This document shows positions 58 through 8,449 of a stretch of DNA of 8,449 bases, piece after piece. The DNA is taken from the NCBI GenBank assembly GCA_002794465.1, contig MTSL01000151.1, positions 27,296 to 35,744 of the forward strand, read 5' to 3'. Below the pieces are notes generated by a model. That model was given only the letters and a program-made list of their open reading frames with translations. It did no database searches and was not told the DNA's origin. The translations under genes and the position numbers were made by a program. Source of the DNA: Paramicrosporidium saccamoebae KSL3 (Eukaryota; Fungi; Cryptomycota). The stretch's first letter is position 1; every line of letters starts with the position of its first letter.

Positions 58-1539
58 ATGCGGATGATTGTCCGCCATATCGTTATGATTGTTTTCCCAC
101 TTACTACCTGGGCAGCTAAATTGGGGGCCGATTTGGAAAATGCAGAGGTGGAATTGAAAACAGTTTTCCGGATGGGTCTCTACCAAGATGCGACAAAGCG
201 TCTCGCACAGATCTTTAGCGATTATGGGAAAAGGTTTGATGAAGCAGACATAGAGGATAAGTTTGTATATGTACAGAAGCTCGACTACTTATATCGGCAA
301 TATGAAGGATTTATTGCATGCAAAAAGTTTCGCTCGCTCCAGAGCGCGATAGATGGTTGGAATCGCGGCCTCCTAGATCATATATATGTCGATGCATACT
401 ACTTGGGCTGGAAATGGGATTTAAGAGGCTACCAGAGATGCAAAGACGCTTATGAGGAATTTGCAAAGCCTCTAAAGGACACTAGCGAATCTGCTCAGCA
501 GCTGCGAAGCGAATTGTTCGAAGACCTAGCCGATGCCCTGTACGAGAGCCCGTGTATCTGTTTCAAAGAGCCCACTCAACAGTTGGCAGCATTCTACCTG
601 AAATTCAACGAGGAGATGAAAGGTAACACTCCAGAAGATTTCAAGAATTACGTACTCGATACGTTTGAAGATGACTCTTCTGGATTCAATGCGACAGTAC
701 TCTATTGTTAATTCTAACAAATTTAGGTTGGCGGGGTAATGGCTACTCTGTTCCTCCACTTTAATGACCATTCGCGTGCCATGGAGACTATTATAAAGAC
801 CATGCCCTTTGCACTCGAAGAACCTAAAATGAATACTTTTGCCCTCAAGACGGCTATTGATGTACTGGGCGATCTTGTTCTGGACGATCCTGACGATGTT
901 GTGTACCTTGCCATTTTGTTAACGGCATCTGGACTTGATTTTCGTCGCTACTCGTATCCTGTAGGAATAGTGCCTAGTGATGTTTCTTGGGATGGGATTT
1001 TCGGGGCTGGTGGTGCTTCCCAAGGCAAAACCGAGATGCCAGAGCTCGTTTTATTAGCGGTAAAGGCCTTTGGTTCTATTATGCGCTTCAATTTTGAAGA
1101 ATCTCATACTCGTATCACTTTGCTAGAAAGGCAAATTCTCAGCAATTTGGAGGAAAGTCGGCAATATTTGCAACTAGTACAGAATCTGTGGCATTTCAGA
1201 TATTGTATTGCAGCTTTCCTTGAGTTTTCACTTAAGAAGGAGAATGCAAGTCGCACCACTATTAAGGATGTATTTAGAGATATGCGCTACTGGGAACGCT
1301 GGACAGAGTTGTTTTGGCTGAGAGACGAAACCCCAAATATGGACGAAGAGGCGGCCATTCACTTTCTCGACGCAATCGGTAGACTTTCAAAACAGTTTGA
1401 GCCTGGAAAATTTGCCCCCTCGTTGGAAGACATGCGTCTTCCTCGACCCCACATGGAAGTGATAGAAGCGGAAAATCTAGAAGCAATGGCTAGCTATATA
1501 ACATTAGATGATAATGCCAATTCATGGGACGATTTTTAA
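58..1539 (+). CDS. Hypothetical ~483-aa mostly helical protein, join(58..696,727..1539); possible N-terminal signal peptide; ends ...DDNANSWDDF
   Basis: ORFs 58-711 and 739-1539 are in the same frame. The 30-nt segment 697-726 (GTACTC...CTAAC...TTTAG) contains the TAA at 709-711. Removing it gives ...FNAT|VGGVMATLF... No family recognised. The start could also be ATG 64 or 85. Confidence 0.75.
697..726 (+). other. Spliceosomal intron, 30 nt, phase 0
   Basis: GTACTC donor, CTAAC branch-like motif 714-718, TTTAG acceptor; removal joins two in-frame ORFs. Confidence 0.8.
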
Positions 1540-1552
1540 GAATCTATTAAAT

Positions 1553-1558
1553 AATAAA
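1553..1558 (+). promoter_or_regulatory. Putative polyadenylation signal AATAAA for gene 1
   Basis: AATAAA 13 nt after the TAA stop at 1537-1539, within an AT-rich tract. Confidence 0.5.
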
Positions 1559-1615
1559 GACGACGCAAACTCGTCAGTAACACATCCTAATTTGGATGGC
1601 GAATCCAGGGATAGC

Positions 1616-2718
1616 ATGACAGTGGGAGATTCTACGGAGCTTAATCTGACCTGGCTGCACTGCAACGAATGCCATCGGTCATTTGAGCATCACAACCGGC
1701 TTGCAGTAGAAGTCGATGGCCTGCGTGTGATGAGAAGCGACCTAATGTTTGCCTTTACTTCCTGTGGACACTTTTTCTGCGAAAACTGTGTCCAGCAGCA
1801 CAGTATGACCGAGTTGCCGTGAATGATTCGTAGCAATTGGAGGCAAGTTAATATGCGCAATATGCCAGTGTGATGCAACTGCATTCAAGATCGACAACCA
1901 CGTCCCCAAGACGTTGGAGATGTACTTGAGACCTCCCATCGGACAACTCGAAGATTCTATTTCTGTCATGACTGTATTCTGCCAGACAACCTAATGGTGT
2001 AGTTTCAAATCAGCAACGCCTGTCATCTAATCAAGAGTCTACGAGCCAAGGTGGTACAGCAGAAGGAGCTCATCTCCAAAGCAAAACAGGAGCTCGCCAG
2101 TCAAAAGCTACTCAAGGAGAAGCTGAATGAGCTGCAGCAGGAAAATGATCGTCTATGTAGAAAGTATTGTCTGCGGTCAAGCGATGACGAGTAGGTTGGA
2201 TGATGTGACGCGTGCGGCCGGGAGTGCCACTCCAAGTAGCAAACAAATGGCCTCGCCCAGCCATACAATCCAAGTGCCGGGAAGATTGTCACTGAGATCG
2301 CCAATGAGACAAGGGCCACTAGCACCGTCCAGGCTTACTAATGAGTGGAATGCCCCAAGATCACCCTCCATCAGTGAAATATTTGTCAGACAGCCCACGT
2401 AAGAGCAGCGGGAGATGGCCTAATGCTAGACACGGTTGGAATCAGCCCCAACTTCCGTTCCAACCCCAAATCTCTCACCAATCCCAGTCGCAACAGCAGC
2501 TTTTTCATGATCCTCAGTTAATTCAGCCGGTTTATAACACTCCCGAAGTGAGGGCCCGATCCGTCATCCAGATTCCTCGCACTGCCCCCGCTCCCATCTA
2601 CAACAGCCGTAGTCGGACGAGTCTACCCCCTAGTCCGCGTCCTGTGCATCGACATACTGATTATTCACGCGGATTTAACCCAACACAAAACTCTTATTCA
2701 CATGGCGGCGCTATTTAG
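1616..2718 (+). CDS. RNF212: Zip3/RNF212-family RING E3 ligase (meiotic crossover factor), ~326 aa, join(1616..1802,1834..1973,2003..2163,2195..2398,2430..2718)
   Basis: The spliced product has WLHCNEC...FAFTSCGHFFCENC...CAICQC (N-terminal C3HC4 RING starting WxHCN, as in RNF212/RNF212B/Zip3). It continues YLRPP...SVMTFQ, then a coiled coil (LRAKVVQQKELISKAKQELASQKLLKEKLNELQQENDRL) and an S/P/Q-rich tail. Four 29-31 nt GT-AG introns keep the frame; the CDS totals 981 nt. Confidence 0.8.
1803..1833 (+). other. Intron, 31 nt (RING gene intron 1)
   Basis: GTATGA...CGTAG; removal supplies the last CxxC pair of the RING domain. Confidence 0.88.
1974..2002 (+). other. Intron, 29 nt (RING gene intron 2)
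   Basis: GTATTC...CTAAT...GTAG; gives SVMT|FQIS, matching the conserved FQ of the RNF212 family. Confidence 0.85.
2164..2194 (+). other. Intron, 31 nt (RING gene intron 3)
   Basis: GTATTG...ATGAC...GTAG; bypasses the in-frame TAG and joins the frame of ORF 2127-2402. Confidence 0.75.
2399..2429 (+). other. Intron, 31 nt (RING gene intron 4)
   Basis: GTAAGA...CTAAT...CTAG; joins the frame of ORF 2341-2718. Confidence 0.75.
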
Positions 2719-4098
2719 TGTAATTATACCGGGCCCGGCGTGGAACACTTCCGGGACGAAACGATGTCTAATAAACTGTGCAGCGATCCAAACGTTTACA
2801 AGGAGGAAAAGTATGGAGGCAGCCCAGACGGCAACAAAGACTTCCTGGCCGAGGAACTCGAGACGGTAGGCCAGATTAAGCCACAGTCCCTGGGCGCCAA
2901 ACCAGAGCACAGACATGGCTGTCCAGCGAAGAGAGGTGATATTGTGCATAGAGTTGTAAGCCATAGGAAACAGCGCCAGATACCAAAGAAAGTATTGAGA
3001 GGTGATCACCTTGTTGAATGCAACAAAGACGAATGTGATGATAAAGCAGGCAAATGCCAAATCTTTCTTGCCAAACTTGATCCCTGCCACAAGAAAAAAG
3101 ACAATCTGGGGAATGAACACGGCCAGTTCTGTAAATTGCGGCAACTTGGTCACAGCGTCCGTGTAGAAGAGGTAAAAGTATGGTGAATAATTGTGGCGAT
3201 GGTCGCGCCGGGTGAGGTGGTAGAGGAATGATTGCTCAATATATTCCATGCCATAGAGGCGGTAGCATATGCCAGTAAGGACCAGGAAACTCGCCAGGGA
3301 AGCAAGACCAAAGACGAAAATGCTCCGAATACGATCCGATGCGCTATGCATTTGGATGAAATTTACCTTTTGAGGGGTAGCCAAGGTGCTTGCAGGCCTC
3401 TGCTCACGCGGCTGCTGTTGCTTCTTCTTCTTATTCTTAAAGGAAGGACTGCCCTCTCTGCTGGGTGTGGGGGAGGCAGTTGGAGTCTCCAGTTTGGGCG
3501 ACATTGGCGGACTCTCGATTAGTTTCTTCGACCTACCGCGCACAAGATGAGCCAAAATTGCGATGCTGTAAATGATGGGGAACAATTTGAAATGTACTGC
3601 AGCTCCATAAGCCAAGCCGCCCAACAATGGTCGATTGGAGGTGATAAAGTAGAGGGAGGACAGTACGAGGACGCTGAGTAATGATTCGGCATTTCCCCGT
3701 GTGCTGATAGTAAAAACCATTGGATTCAGGAGCCAGAACAACCCTACCAGACGGGCGGCACGCGAGGGATTCGTCCCGCGGAGTAGAAAGAGATAGATGA
3801 AATATGCAGCCACCAAATCGAATGCACAGAATAGCACTTTTCCAAACATTCCGCCCGTCCATCCATTGGGCACCAATAGCACAGCCAACAATGGCGTATA
3901 TCTAAAAGTGTGTCGACTGTAGGGCGACCCTCCTGCTCGCACAGCCGCAGCGGCGTCCGAAAACACCCAGTAATCCACATCAGTGTACTTTACTTCCAGC
4001 GTCCTGTCTTGCCATGCGCCGTACACCAACAGCACCACCCGCACAAACACAGCCAACAGCGCCGCTTGGAGGAACGCCCGCATGCCGTAGTGTGCCAT
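2698..4098 (-). CDS. GPI14: GPI mannosyltransferase I (PIG-M/Gpi14), 466 aa, intronless
   Basis: Family motifs VKYTDVDY (DxD), GGSPYSRHTFRYTPLLA, FWLLNP...ISTRGNAES, AVHFKLFPIIY, YHLTRRDHRHNYSPYFY, FVAFNKVITSQYFLWY; multiple hydrophobic TM segments. The start could be ATG 4098 or 4083. Confidence 0.95.
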   Translation of the reverse strand: MAHYGMRAFLQAALLAVFVRVVLLVYGAWQDRTLEVKYTDVDYWVFSDAAAAVRAGGSPYSRHTFRYTPLLAVLLVPNGWTGGMFGKVLFCAFDLVAAYFIYLFLLRGTNPSRAARLVGLFWLLNPMVFTISTRGNAESLLSVLVLSSLYFITSNRPLLGGLAYGAAVHFKLFPIIYSIAILAHLVRGRSKKLIESPPMSPKLETPTASPTPSREGSPSFKNKKKKQQQPREQRPASTLATPQKVNFIQMHSASDRIRSIFVFGLASLASFLVLTGICYRLYGMEYIEQSFLYHLTRRDHRHNYSPYFYLFYTDAVTKLPQFTELAVFIPQIVFFLVAGIKFGKKDLAFACFIITFVFVAFNKVITSQYFLWYLALFPMAYNSMHNITSLRWTAMSVLWFGAQGLWLNLAYRLEFLGQEVFVAVWAASILFLLVNVWIAAQFIRHRFVPEVFHAGPGIITLNSAAM

Positions 4099-4143: not shown

Positions 4144-4971
4144 ATGTTCATGCGAGGATTAAAAGTTGAAAAGTTGGTGCCGAAGAAGGAATGTACGGTT
4201 CTGGATAAAGGGTGAATGGTAGGGAGAGAGGACAAGCAGAAGGTAGTACTAGTGGCCTGCGGCTCATTCTCTCCCATTACCTATCTCCACCTGAGGCTTT
4301 TCGGTACTGCATAAATATGAGCTGACCTTTAGAAATGGCACGGGATGCTCTCCATGACAAGGAGATCTATCAGGTTGTGGGTGGATTCATGTCGCCCGTC
4401 TCTGACGAGTACCAAAAGGTTGGCCTGGAGCCGTCTCGTCATCGCCTCGAAATGTGCCGTCTGGCTGTGGCTGGGAGCGATTGGATTGATGTTGACGAGT
4501 GGGAGTCCTGCCAGTCAAGCTACCAACGGACAGTGCAGGTTCTGGGATCGCTGCAAGAACGACTGGATGAGTACGGTGGTGGGGCGCGGGTTATGTTGCT
4601 GGCAGGTGCGGATCTGATAAAATCGTTCGAAACGCCGGGTTTATGGGCTCCTGAAGATGTAACGGCACCATTCTGCTAACATTGTAGCAAAGTGCCATTG
4701 TGGGAACATATGGGTGTGTGATTGTAGATCGATGGAATTCGGATATTTCAGAATTCCTACTTACTGACCCGATACTGTACCGATATCGGAAGAACATTCA
4801 TGTCGTGAAACAGTTTATCAGCAACGACATTAGTTCCACCAAGATTAGGTGAGTCTGAGTTTAAATGATTGACTCTGCAGATTATACATAGCACGGGGAC
4901 TGTCAGTGAAGTACCTGTTACCAGATTCTGTTATTGAATACATAAGTGAACACGATCTCTACACTAACTAA
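4144..4971 (+). CDS. NMA1: Nicotinamide/nicotinate mononucleotide adenylyltransferase (NMNAT), ~235 aa, join(4144..4192,4223..4303,4333..4658,4688..4848,4881..4971)
   Basis: VVLVACGSFSPITYLHLRLFEMA (HxGH-like signature), GGFMSPVSDEYQKVGL, WIDVDEWE, MLLAGADLIKSF...PGLWAPED, YGCVIVDR, NDISSTKIR, SVKYLLPDSVIEYI...LY. Four 29-32 nt introns. The first exon and start (4144, 4150 or 4216) are less certain. Confidence 0.93.
4193..4222 (+). other. Probable intron, 30 nt (NMNAT intron 1)
   Basis: GTACGG...GTAG; removes the in-frame TGA 4213-4215 and gives LKVEKLVPKKE-W-REDKQKVVLVACG. Confidence 0.6.
4304..4332 (+). other. Intron, 29 nt (NMNAT intron 2)
   Basis: GTACTG...CTGAC...TTTAG; restores the conserved HLRLF-E-MA. 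Confidence 0.93.
4659..4687 (+). other. Intron, 29 nt (NMNAT intron 3)
   Basis: GTAACG...CTAAC...GTAG; restores WAPED|QSAIVGTYGCVIVDR. Confidence 0.9.
4849..4880 (+). other. Intron, 32 nt (NMNAT intron 4)
   Basis: GTGAGT...TTGAC...GCAG; restores SSTKI-R-LYIARGLSVKY. Confidence 0.93.
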
Positions 4972-5073: not shown

Positions 5074-5241
5074 AGCAACGTAATGAAATATTGGCAACGT
5101 AATACAATACCAACATGATATTAGCAACGTAATACGACACCAACATGATATTAGCAACGTAATACGACATCAGCACATGATATTAGCAACGTGATACAAC
5201 ACCAACACATGATATTAGCAACGTAATATGATATTGACAAC
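5074..5241. repeat. Minisatellite of 30-32 nt units with conserved core ATGATATTAGCAACGTAATA, plus truncated 19-nt terminal units
   Basis: Cores end at 5104, 5134, 5164, 5196 and 5228 (spacing 30, 30, 32, 32). Linkers are CAATACCAAC, CGACACCAAC, CGACATCAGCAC and CAACACCAACAC. Partial copies lie at 5074-5084 and 5228-5241. Confidence 0.92.
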
Positions 5242-5265: not shown

Positions 5266-5787
5266 TTACCAGCCAAACCGTTGGCCAAATGGATTCCACC
5301 TTGGATTGATTGTTTTGGCCAGCGGTTGCACGAGAATTAGCCTCGGCCTCCCAGGCAAATCTAGCGCCAAGTAGCGTTCTTCCCAAGCACCATTTTCGCT
5401 TTCTATCGCCTGGATTGTCACTTTTGCCTTTTCATTCTGTCCCTCTACATAAAACGTCGCGTCCACCACTTGCCGTCCATCATTGGCAATGCTGTGCTGC
5501 ACAGCTGGCCTCCTCCTCCGACCGTCGCTCAGGCCATAGACGGAAAGGTTCGGCCCCAGCAACCTCTCTAATTCGACGTGGTGGAGGGAGAGTGTATTGT
5601 CAATGACTGGGTATGTTCCGCCTGGGAGAAACAGTTCTTGTAAGAGAACGTAACCAATACCGCCAAAGAGACAAACTGTCCCGCCTAGAACGACTGCATA
5701 AAATCCACTACGACTCTTGTCGGCTGCCGTAGAATACACCCGATATCTCTGCGCTATGGATACATTCTGGAGGCGTCTCACGAGCAT
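5266..5787 (-). CDS. TIM21: Mitochondrial import inner membrane translocase subunit Tim21, 173 aa
   Basis: Arg-rich presequence-like N-terminus (MLVRRLQNVSIAQRYRVYST) and a single TM (FYAVVLGGTVCLFGGIGYVLL). Then ELFLPGG, LLG...VYG, RRRRP, FYVEG and YLALDLPGRPRLILV, which follow the Tim21 intermembrane-space domain pattern. Confidence 0.82.
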   Translation of the reverse strand: MLVRRLQNVSIAQRYRVYSTAADKSRSGFYAVVLGGTVCLFGGIGYVLLQELFLPGGTYPVIDNTLSLHHVELERLLGPNLSVYGLSDGRRRRPAVQHSIANDGRQVVDATFYVEGQNEKAKVTIQAIESENGAWEERYLALDLPGRPRLILVQPLAKTINPRWNPFGQRFGW

Positions 5788-5857: not shown

Positions 5858-8449
5858 ATGCCCACTGTTAGCGGCGGGCTAACATTGAGACATTGCGCGC
5901 CATTTGTGAGGGCTGGGGAACAGTGGTGTCGCGATGGAGACTTGACATTGATGAATGTGCTCTTGGACTTGTTTACTGCGCTGGGGAGTGAGCTGTCAAT
6001 GTTGGAATGTACGTCACCGTATTTGAACATGTTCAAGGACAACTGTACAATTTTGATGTAGCAGAGTGATTAGTAGTTTGTGCTCTGTGGGAGAAGTTTG
6101 GTGATTGTGGACTGGGAGGGTATGATATTGTTGGTCCGATTGGCAGTGGTGCCCACGGAACAGTAGACGTGACTTTTGTTTGAGGTGGTAGGTTGACATT
6201 GGGAGGAGGTTGGATGATGGCGCGATTGTCGCTGTGAAGAAGATTTGCAAGTCTCGCGTTCTTCAAACTGGTGAGGTTGCCAGCATTCTGATGGAAAGGA
6301 TTGTCCTCAGCCAGCCATCTCGATGGCTCTTGCCCCTGTGGGAGGCGTTTCAGGATTGGGACAATCTCTACTTGGTCACAGAGTTCATGTTCGGAGGCAG
6401 TTTGGAAGATCTTTCTGCTCGTCCAGACTACTTGTATGGCAGTGAGGAGAGCAAAAAATTGCCAGAGGAGACGGTTCAATTTTACATGGCAGAGCTGCTT
6501 CTGGCAATTGAAGAATTGCATTCAATCGGATTCGTACATCGCGATGTGAAGCCAGGAAATGTGCTAATAGGCCGCGATGGCCATATTAGATTAGCCGACT
6601 TTGGATGTGCTGCGCGACTGGCTTCTGATGGAAAGGTAAACGCTCCAATGCGCTTTCCTTTCAGTATCATTGTAGTGTAGCTGTAGGTACTCAGGACTAT
6701 TTAGCGCCGGAAGTCCTGTTGGCGCAGGAAAAGCCGACACGACTGGGAACCCAGTCGGATTTGTGGAGCTTTGGAGTGACCATGTACGACTTACTAAGCG
6801 GTGATACTCCATTTTATGACATGTCCACTCTACACACTTATCATCGCATCAAGAATCACAAGGTACACAGAGTTCAAGTCTCATCTGCAGGATTACTTAA
6901 AGTTTGATCAAAGTGTATTCAGTGGAGAGGCCATTGATCTATTGCAAAACTTGATTTGCGACGTAGAGGATAGATTTACCATTTCGCAGGCGAAGGAGCA
7001 CTTGTTCTTCAAGGGGATCAATTGGGAGACAGTCTCCCATAAGGAGCCCCCATTTATACCAATGGAATGCGACGATTTGCGTGAATATCTGCAGCCGCCG
7101 GAAGAGGATGATGAAGGTACAATTACCAGGCCATTTAGGACGAGAACTAAAGACTTTGTGGGGCTAAACTTGCCCTTTGTTGGATTCACATGGCCGCGAC
7201 GTAAGCTGATGATTGCTGAAGAGTCAGTAAGAAGAAAATCCAACTCGGTGTCCTCGGCGTCGTCTGTGAGTCTGTCGCAAGTCTCGCTATCAGAGGCCTC
7301 CATGCGGTTGAAGACACGTTCATCTCTCTCCTTGGCCCCCATCAAAGAGGAACCACTGGTGGAACAATTGGAGGCTGATGGCACAATGGGATATGCATTA
7401 GAAGAGGCGAAATTGCAATTGGAGTGGCGCGAGAGTGAGCTAAGGGAACAGCAGATGGAAAATGAAACTCTGCAAAGGAAAGTGGAAACTCTGCAAGGCA
7501 TCAATGAGGTGGATCGTAAAAAGATTAACGAGCTGGTCAGAAAGCTAGAGGATACTCTGCTGAACGGATCACCACTCACTAGCCGACGAGGATCCGATAT
7601 CAAGAATGATGGAAAGGAGAAAAAGATGAGACAGGAAATGCGACAAGTGGAACAAAAGTATTTGCGTGAATGCCAAGTTAGGGAGCAGTTGGAGCTAGAA
7701 TTGGCCGAGATAAAGGCACACAAAGCAATGCTCGAGTTGGAACTATCGACCCTCCAGCTGCAATTTCAGAACGATACCCACAGCATTGCGTCTGTACATC
7801 GATCACCGCCAAAAGATGCGCGTTCCAGACGGGGAACTGGTGGATCTTTTAGTGTATTCCGTAGCCTTATGAAATCCTCAGAGCTGAAAGCAATCAAATC
7901 AACCATTGAGGGTTATTTGAAGATTCCCTCGATTTCTGGGAAAAAGGTTACTTGGAAAAAGTCGTATTTTTCGCTTCACGATAATGTCCTTTGGGTTGGC
8001 GACAAGGCCAAAGGCACCATGACGCACTTTCTTTCGCTGCAATGCGAGGCATTCTGGATACAGCCGGTCGGTGCTCGTGAATTGCCTCAAATCCCTGCCA
8101 AACAGACTCTCGAGTGTTTCAAAATACGGTCCTGTGGCAAGGACATGTCAGTCCATCTGTCCCGATCCTCTTCAAAACTAAATCTCACCTCTCGTAATGA
8201 TGGGGTGGGCAATATGGAGGATGTTGCTGTTGCTTTGGAGAGAGAGGTAAAGGTCAGAGAGGGTGCTCGGCAAATGTTGGATGTTGCCACATCAGACGAG
8301 GTAAAGACGCAAATTCAGTACCATTTGGATGCATCAGACCGCAAAATTGAAGACTTGAAGCTACGACTTGCAACCAATACGACTGCAGGCGGAGCAATGA
8401 CTGATTTTAACGGCCACTTCTTAGAGCCTCTGACAAGTGTTGGTAGGAT
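5858..8449 (+). CDS. ROCK/MRCK/citron (DMPK-family) AGC Ser/Thr kinase, 3'-partial, join(5858..6044,6074..6162,6192..6635,6665..6862,6891..>8449)
   Basis: N-terminal LLDLFTAL extension; IGSGAHGTV, VAVKK, HRDVKPGN, DFG, SVAVGTQDYLAPE, DLWSFG, GDTPFY, FFKGINWE, PPFIP and hydrophobic motif LPFVGFT (7170-7190). Then a coiled coil, PH-like IEGYLKIP...WKKSYF (from 7905), an HR1-like segment (8214-8372) and a C1-like start FNGHF (from 8406). The frame 6891-8449 has no stop, so the ORF track missed it. Confidence 0.9.
6045..6073 (+). other. Intron, 29 nt (or 32 nt to 6076; kinase intron 1)
   Basis: GTACAA...TAGTAG; both acceptors restore the frame into YDIVGPIGSG. Confidence 0.75.
6163..6191 (+). 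other. Intron, 29 nt (kinase intron 2)
   Basis: GTAGAC...GTAG; gives GAHGT|VDIGRR...VAVKK with normal kinase subdomain I-II spacing. Confidence 0.82.
6636..6664 (+). other. Intron, 29 nt (kinase intron 3)
   Basis: GTAAAC...TTCAG; gives DGK|YHCSVAVGT, the same spacing as DGTVQSSVAVGT in MRCK-type activation loops. Confidence 0.9.
6863..6890 (+). other. Intron, 28 nt (kinase intron 4)
   Basis: GTACAC...GCAG; gives IKNHK|DYLKF and opens the long terminal exon. Confidence 0.9.

Follow-up and report, generated by a model that had tools for sequence, protein, structure and literature searches.

What kind of kinase is encoded at the end of contig MTSL01000151.1 of Paramicrosporidium saccamoebae, and how is its C-terminal tail built? 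The stretch of DNA analyzed here (the window, 8,449 nucleotides) is identical to the final 8449 bases of this contig (35,744 bp; assembly GCA_002794465.1). P. saccamoebae is an intranuclear parasite of amoebae from the Rozellomycota (PMC5701793). The initial annotation had suggested a ROCK-like kinase with a Rho-binding HR1 domain nested inside a split PH-C1 module, in a fungal-like lineage; the latter agrees with the position of the organism among basal fungi. We consider it probable that the regulatory tail of a serine/threonine kinase of the DMPK family (ROCK/MRCK-type) lies at the 3' end of the window, and that HR1 and C1 are nested in a split PH domain of this tail. The comparisons described below establish the order of the domains and the homology of each part. 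The features of the tail are the following:

7905..8132, forward strand: N-terminal part of the PH domain (IEGYLKIP...ECFKIRS), with six predicted strands and a short helix.
8133..8210, forward strand: Ser-rich linker, predicted to be disordered, its length and sequence varying among orthologues.
8211..8375, forward strand: HR1 (REM-1) repeat, NMEDVAVALEREVKVREGARQML...RKIEDLKLRLAT, recognized by Pfam HR1, by the family profile and in the AlphaFold2 (AF2) model; the modelled first helix is LEREVKVREGARQML and the second QIQYHLDASDRKIEDLKLRL, with a three-residue turn between them.
8406..8449, forward strand: start of the C1 domain, FNGHFLEPLTSVG, cut by the contig end.

The N-terminal half of PH, the HR1-like segment and the C1 start all lie in one unbroken frame of the exon at 6891-8449, and the end of the contig truncates the gene at the histidine that opens C1. 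Because the window end coincides with the contig end, the gene cannot be extended in GCA_002794465.1; the names attached to short C1/PH-C fragments, which were looked up as its possible continuation, did not include P. saccamoebae. When the complete spliced product was used as query, two close orthologues were retrieved from public sequencing-run assemblies, P0002 (50% identical to the window kinase, N-truncated) and P0003 (43% identical). The latter is a complete intronless open reading frame (ORF) of 857 residues with the same order of parts, present in two independent runs. Past HR1, both contain GH-x(10-13)-C-x2-C-...-C-x2-C-x4-H-x2-C-x7-C, that is, all eight zinc ligands of C1, then LP.YF....REEC..WI, corresponding to the final PH strand and the tryptophan-bearing helix, and both end about 10 residues beyond this helix.

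The motif FNGHF (8406-8420, within FNGHFLEPL at 8406-8432), in which the initial annotation had seen the start of a C1 domain, is thus present and continues into the eight ligands in P0002 and P0003, while the window holds the first histidine only. In an alignment of 19 module sequences this histidine falls into the sole invariant column, which opens the H..C..C..C..C..H..C..C pattern in all complete relatives. The ligand pattern H-x(11-12)-C-x2-C-x(11-14)-C-x2-C-x4-H-x2-C-x(6-7)-C is found, the ligands being conserved in at least 90% of the 19 sequences. The Pfam family C1_1 matches chytrid relatives with 37-46 bits, above its gathering score, and P0002 with 12.6 bits, the rozellid C1 being divergent.

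An exhaustive HMMER search of sequence representatives yielded 81 proteins at E<=1e-3. No homologue of the C-terminal 186 residues alone was found in a word-indexed search, and in the same type of search the 19-sequence module alignment gave no match at E<=1e-5; the 81 relatives from HMMER include P0003, which the word-indexed tool itself had returned earlier. Named matches come from the chytrids Rhizophlyctis, Thoreauomyces, Cladochytrium, Geranomyces, Blyttiomyces, Siphonaria, Chytridiales sp. JEL 0842, Batrachochytrium and Synchytrium, as well as from Olpidium and Linnemannia (Mortierellomycota); no Dikarya occur among the named matches, many matches carrying no name. In their source annotations these proteins are hypothetical, 'CDC42 binding protein kinase' or 'MRCK alpha/beta'. 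The chytrid, Olpidium and Linnemannia proteins are 1200-1575 residues long and have above-threshold matches to PH_MRCK and C1_1, separated by 110-220 residues. Most chytrid, Olpidium and Mortierellomycota proteins (e.g., P0133, P0134, P0140, and P0156) have two HR1-like repeats in the gap between the PH N-half and C1, the second being more divergent in chytrids, and rozellids have one. A further group of proteins of 800-900 residues has a tail of the same kinase...HR1-C1-PH-C layout; we suspect that this group is microsporidian in origin. Among the matches, the layout is shared by many chytrids, Olpidium and Linnemannia. Judged from these sequences, the PH-HR1-C1-PH kinase architecture is conserved and not unique to P. 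saccamoebae, being present unremarked in public chytrid, Olpidium and Mortierellomycota proteins.

The evidence for a split PH domain comes from comparison with 2ROV, a split-PH construct of ROCK2 from which C1 was removed. A profile of the three modules matches 2ROV with both its N-half and its C-half, and between the two halves it matches C1 domains in PDB (Nore1, PKC iota, chimaerin, and Vav). When the insert was excised in silico from 13 relatives and the resulting PH profile was searched against solved structures, its alignment with 2ROV crossed the junction and ran from one end to the other (profile positions 5-112 against residues 3-110; E 3.4e-17), and the PH domain of Caenorhabditis elegans MRCK-1 was matched as well (E 4e-15). 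This end-to-end alignment places the split of PH in the very loop that is interrupted in ROCK. Pfam PH was recognized in 12 of the 13 excised sequences and PH_MRCK in 11; in the excised P0003 both are above threshold, the PH match spanning profile positions 1-104 of 105. The split by an inserted C1 is seen in P0002, P0003 and the 13 relatives, the window holding the PH N-half and the first C1 histidine. Both the PH N-half that the initial annotation had placed after the coiled coil, where the family profile aligns to 2ROV, and the second half expected downstream, which is present in the colinear P0002 and P0003, are therefore supported.

The AF2 model of the P0003 module, built from the 19-sequence alignment, has a mean predicted local distance difference test score (pLDDT) of 84.3. 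Along the module follow the PH strands (residues 6-79), the linker (88-109), two helices (113-136 and 139-174), C1 (188-238), and then a strand (244-247) and a helix (251-269). The counterpart of the Ser-rich linker is modelled with pLDDT 40-51 at residues 81-110, below 50 at 88-109. In a Foldseek search the model matched 2ROV best (E 1.5e-4, root-mean-square deviation 2.1 Å) and also the C1-PH-CNH module of MRCK-1. Both the alignments and the model predict that the segment after C1 supplies the missing last strand and helix of PH.

For HR1, an alignment of 34 HR1-like segments with the window as the first sequence was searched against solved structures. The top matches were HR1b of PKN1 (4NKG, 7.7e-6; 1URF, 1e-5), followed by PKN1 HR1a from the complex with RhoA (1CXZ_B, 2e-5) and, in fourth place, HR1 of TOCA1 (5FRG, 2e-4). 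AF2 modelled the 70-residue segment of the window with pLDDT 89.3 as two long helices (residues 4-32 and 36-68, at about 8202-8396) with a turn of three residues between them; the sole sign that these helices pack antiparallel is high template modelling scores (TM-scores) to two-helix hairpin proteins. A single position of the alignment, occupied by Glu, reaches 90% conservation or more. The signature E..K/R...GAE/Q.M/L, shared with HR1a and HR1b of PKN1, is kept from Rozellomycota to chytrids and Mortierellomycota. On the strength of these profile matches the inserted helical hairpin is assigned to HR1, and the in-frame HR1 after the PH N-half that had been noticed in the initial annotation is upheld by the Pfam match, by the PKN1 and TOCA1 profile matches and by the modelled two-helix segment.

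Several observations weigh against the reading of this tail as a Rho-sensing HR1 and a C1 nested in a split PH. Owing to the contig end, neither the body of C1 nor the second half of PH is contained in the window, and the PH part of the window scores 18.8 bits with Pfam PH and 15.2 bits with PH_MRCK, below threshold. Pfam HR1 matches the window with 26.7 bits (E 5.6e-6) and the 70-residue segment with 29.5 bits (E 7e-7), below the gathering score of 33.1. With the isolated hairpin model as query, Foldseek gave no PKN and nothing but generic hairpins of two helices (encapsulated ferritins among them) at E>0.2, a result that fits a hairpin fold but, the fold being so simple, is uninformative on HR1. 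HR1_TOCA, a family of the Cdc42-binding type, is also matched by 16 of the 34 segments, which leaves the GTPase partner ambiguous. Finally, some HR1 repeats, e.g., PKN HR1c, bind GTPases poorly. By their scores, the HR1 and PH matches of the window are more than chance, yet they remain sub-threshold until relatives are added.

Could the apparent HR1 be a chance match of an ordinary coiled coil or helical linker? Charged helical sequences do yield many weak coiled-coil matches, and the structural search with the hairpin alone was non-specific. However, we regard this explanation as very unlikely, given that the first three solved structures retrieved are PKN1 HR1 domains and the fourth is a TOCA1 HR1, and that 30 of the 34 family members match Pfam HR1 individually (best E 1.8e-12). 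Moreover, the HR1 part of the module profile picked out, from 1.84 billion representatives, proteins whose N-terminus bears two or three HR1-like repeats; in three of these proteins a PKC-type kinase motif is present.

The gene upstream of the tail was reconstructed as a spliced model, which has the following features:

5858..8449, forward strand: DMPK-family AGC kinase gene, 3'-truncated, colinear with P0003 in the spliced model; the window end is the contig end.
6045..6073, forward strand: intron 1, 29 nucleotides, GT..AG.
6163-6191 (29 nucleotides), 6636-6664 (29 nucleotides) and 6863-6890 (28 nucleotides), forward strand: introns 2-4 of the spliced model.

The exons (5858-6044, 6074-6162, 6192-6635, 6665-6862, and 6891-8449) join three frames at GT..AG sites and encode 825 residues with no stop codon. 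Once the four introns are spliced out, the Gly-rich loop GSGAHGTV, the canonical 12-residue spacing between the Val of this loop and AVK, and the activation segment DFG...AVGTQDYLAPE are regained, and all three align with P0003. The NCBI model of the same locus (P0001, 'AGC/DMPK/GEK protein kinase, partial', 643 residues, window 6192-8433) is mis-spliced: it starts after the Gly-rich loop, has lost YHCSVAVGTQ from the activation segment together with 32 C-lobe residues, and terminates in a spurious ...TSDESL where the true frame runs on through HR1. An assembly or gene-model artefact fusing unrelated genes might be suspected from this partial public model, but its probability is negligible: the last exon is a single open frame of 519 codons from the kinase C-lobe through the C1 start, the model is colinear with P0003 across every exon junction, that intronless orthologue shows the same order in two independent runs, and dozens of other assemblies agree. 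As a separate observation, all seven introns that can be defined in the window are tiny, uniform and of the GT..AG type (28, 29, 29, 29, 29, 29, and 32 nucleotides), and gene-prediction pipelines untuned to 29-nucleotide introns may mis-model many P. saccamoebae genes. Neither introns nor this kinase are discussed in the genome paper of P. saccamoebae.

To which family does the kinase belong? Its catalytic part is organized as follows:

5858..6120, forward strand: N-terminal extension before the kinase domain (LLDLFTALGSE...); the alignment to DMPK 2VD5 begins at query residue 31.
6121..7025, forward strand: protein kinase catalytic domain with three introns inside; Pfam Pkinase, 95.7 and 47 bits on exon pieces.
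6537-6560 and 6597-6605, forward strand: kinase motifs HRDVKPGN and DFG, respectively, in the spliced model.
7026..7193, forward strand: C-terminal tail of the AGC type, with the hydrophobic motif FVGFTW (7176-7193) at its end.

A search of solved structures with residues 1-416 ranked MRCK alpha/beta first (235 bits), followed by ROCK1 (218), ROCK2 (211) and DMPK (198), and then by other AGC kinases, Cbk1 (166), NDR1 (161), PKA (145) and PKC theta (131). The kinase of a chytrid relative ranks alike, with MRCK at 402 and ROCK at 369 bits, and then 363, 333 and 272 bits. FVGFTW aligns to LPFVGFTY of MRCK alpha and is invariant in three orthologues; both the F-x-G-F-T-[YFW] hydrophobic motif and the N-terminal extension, by which the DMPK family is defined, are present. 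The window kinase is, on these alignments, a member of the DMPK family (ROCK, MRCK, DMPK, and citron). The extension may be the counterpart of the dimerizing capped helix bundle of ROCK (PMC4686654), by analogy. Two other identities were considered and rejected, NDR/Cbk1 on the kinase scores and the domain order, and PKN/Pkc1 because HR1 lies C-terminal to a DMPK-type kinase and PKC theta scores just 131 bits. The grouping with NDR/Cbk1 that would have refuted the initial annotation is therefore not seen, and the term 'ROCK-like' used there holds for the family and for the ROCK-type split PH; since the kinase domain is slightly closer to MRCK/GEK than to ROCK, 'ROCK/MRCK-type' is the more accurate label.

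The same evidence raises the question of whether the gene is an MRCK/GEK orthologue, in which HR1 would take the place of CRIB and sense Cdc42 or Rac instead of Rho, the likeness to ROCK being confined to the PH-C1 topology. This is possible, although we do not favor it. Kinase scores are higher with MRCK than with ROCK both for the window and for the chytrid relative, annotations name GEK, MRCK or 'CDC42 binding protein kinase', and nearly half of the HR1 segments match HR1_TOCA too, as noted above. In a crude neighbor-joining tree (326 columns, 200 bootstraps, PKN-like outgroups), which included two MRCK only, no DMPK, citron or NDR, and long rozellid branches, chytrid and Mortierellomycota kinases grouped with MRCK at 81%, with rozellids added at 63%; in the same tree animal ROCKs were monophyletic (99.5%) and separate from the fungal clades. 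Besides this sampling and the use of a distance method, the domain organization argues against MRCK orthology. In MRCK, C1 precedes an unsplit PH, followed by CNH and CRIB (7Z6E), and none of this is present here: C1 lies within PH, which is split at the ROCK position, HR1 is present, and CNH and CRIB are not found.

Between the kinase and the PH domain the following feature was found:

7356..7769, forward strand: presumed coiled coil (about 140 residues); its charged, heptad-like sequence can be aligned between orthologues.

The coiled-coil state of this tether is presumed from its sequence, the only Pfam match in the region being a very weak one to Filament. The tether contains the motif DRKKINELVRKLEDTL (7512-7559), which is invariant in the closest rozellid orthologues and absent from chytrid relatives. 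Upstream of PH, the basic stretch RSRRGTGGS (7821-7847) is present in the window and P0002, and RSRKGT in P0003; it fits the consensus site of AGC kinases. The coiled-coil Rho-binding domain of ROCK (Rho_Binding, PF08912) had no match in the window (E<=10), in P0002 and P0003 (E<=1) or in eight relatives (E<=0.01), whereas animal ROCK homologues retrieved by the search do carry PF08912. CNH and CRIB had no Pfam match in the window, P0002, P0003 or the eight relatives. As no Rho_Binding, CRIB or CNH is detectable, HR1 is the sole recognizable GTPase-binding element of these kinases.

The function of the module we infer from better studied kinases. The kinase would dimerize, and the PH-C1 module would tether it to acidic membrane, a proposal based on ROCK being a constitutive dimer in which a coiled-coil tether carries the membrane-binding PH-C1 at its distal end (PMC4686654). 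The embedded HR1 could bind a GTP-loaded, prenylated, membrane-anchored Rho-family GTPase on the same membrane, because HR1 binds GTP-Rho in PKN and Pkc1 (PMC7925014, PMC2078597). Lipid and active GTPase would then be read together by one compact module, recruitment would need both signals, and the kinase would be placed near cortical substrates such as myosin regulators. With a tether of no more than about 140 residues, the rozellid kinase would work in the immediate vicinity of the membrane.

An alternative is that the hairpin is homologous to HR1 but does not bind a GTPase, serving as a rigid spacer or as a dimerization or autoinhibitory element between PH and C1. The sub-gathering score of the window and the single Glu conserved in the HR1 alignment are compatible with this, and the divergent rozellid C1, as seen in P0002, suggests relaxed or changed function in reduced parasites. 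On the other hand, the E..K/R...GAE/Q.M/L signature has been kept across lineages and no alternative GTPase-binding element is detectable in these kinases, and we judge a non-binding hairpin to be unlikely.

The kinase gene is preceded in the window by the following genes and repeats:

58-1539, forward strand: two adjacent ORFs, possibly one gene, with no Pfam match.
1508-2200, forward strand: RING-domain ORF; zf-RING_5, 29.4 bits, above gathering score.
2698-4098, reverse strand: PIG-M glycosylphosphatidylinositol (GPI) mannosyltransferase, 238 bits.
4222-4960, forward strand: NMNAT-like gene of the cytidylyltransferase fold, found by Pfam scan.
5088-5228: tandem repeat ATATTAGCAACGTAATAC..., unit of about 30 nucleotides, 4.5 copies, 89% matching.
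5266-5787, reverse strand: TIM21, 62 bits.

The RING ORF has apparent short introns, then a coiled-coil-like stretch, a layout that presumably recalls meiotic SUMO/ubiquitin ligases of the Zip3/RNF212 type. In the NMNAT-like gene, excision of introns at 4304-4332, 4659-4687 and 4849-4880 gives one ORF with the motifs GSFSPITYLHLRLFE and ISSTKIR. The tandem repeat is intergenic, with the NMNAT-like gene on one side and TIM21 on the other. The two adjacent ORFs, PIG-M, the NMNAT-like gene and TIM21 are of the ordinary housekeeping kind and show no evident connection with the kinase.

How does the proposed kinase compare with known systems? Like animal ROCK1 and ROCK2, it has an N-terminal extension, a DMPK-family kinase domain, a hydrophobic motif, a helical tether and a C-terminal PH split by C1 at the same loop. 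Unlike them, it carries HR1 between the PH N-half and C1, as a single copy here and as two copies in chytrids and Mortierellomycota, lacks a detectable PF08912 and scores slightly better against MRCK in the kinase domain; its rozellid tether of about 140 residues is far shorter than the coiled coil of human ROCK2, which was measured at 107 nm (PMC4686654). The initial annotation held that animal ROCK has no HR1 at this place; a recent paper does draw an HR1 region in ROCK, but lists it apart from the C-terminal PH/C1 (PMC13646499). With MRCK and Genghis Khan (GEK), the kinase shares the nearest solved kinase structure, a PH of the PH_MRCK family and the presence of C1. With PKN/PRK and fungal Pkc1 it shares an HR1 (ACC-finger) hairpin on an AGC kinase, which is a sensor of Rho-family GTPases there and is predicted to be one here. 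However, in PKN and Pkc1 the HR1s stand on their own at the N-terminus and are followed by C2/C1 and a PKC-type kinase, and here HR1 is C-terminal, nested in PH and joined to a DMPK-type kinase. On sequence comparison, then, the module is ROCK-like in topology, the kinase marginally MRCK-like, and the putative GTPase sensor PKN-like in a position undescribed for these families.

Related kinases have been reported from microsporidia, one DMPK-family kinase per species, with no HR1 or split PH reported; in the AGC/DMPK/GEK kinase of Encephalitozoon cuniculi (CAD25005.1) a C-terminal C1 was the sole accessory domain recognized (PMC4280135, PMC2078597). In 2007 the microsporidian kinase was compared with Cbk1 and a divergent PKC (PMC2078597). 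The ROCK gene is said to be absent from fungi and choanoflagellates, the earliest ROCK being that of Capsaspora (PMC4686654), and an earlier kinome paper considered the DMPK family metazoan-specific (PMC1420674). We found no description of a ROCK-type kinase in chytrids or other early fungi, nor of HR1 inside a split PH, in the searchable literature, which is incomplete. The kinase architecture with PH split by HR1 and C1 is real, conserved and apparently undescribed; database domain annotations may already show it.

The split PH-HR1-C1 could even represent the ancestral opisthokont coupling of a ROCK/MRCK-type kinase to Rho, with animals having lost HR1 and moved Rho binding into the coiled coil. 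We offer this as a speculative scenario that is more doubtful than not. If it is true, fungi ancestrally had ROCK-type kinases and Dikarya lost them. In 2026 the PH-C1 module of human ROCK1 was reported to be itself recruited to Rho activity zones (PMC13646499), which under the ancestral scenario would be a remnant of the old arrangement.

What the locus reveals is that a hallmark of ROCK, the PH domain split by C1, occurs in Rozellomycota, Chytridiomycota, Olpidium and Mortierellomycota, with what appears to be an extra GTPase-binding fold inside. If this HR1 binds Rho, one nested module would act as a natural coincidence detector of lipid and GTPase, and would provide an evolutionary test case for the reported sensing of active Rho by ROCK1 PH-C1 (PMC13646499). 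In chytrid zoospores, which crawl as animal cells do, the kinase is a candidate regulator of actomyosin.

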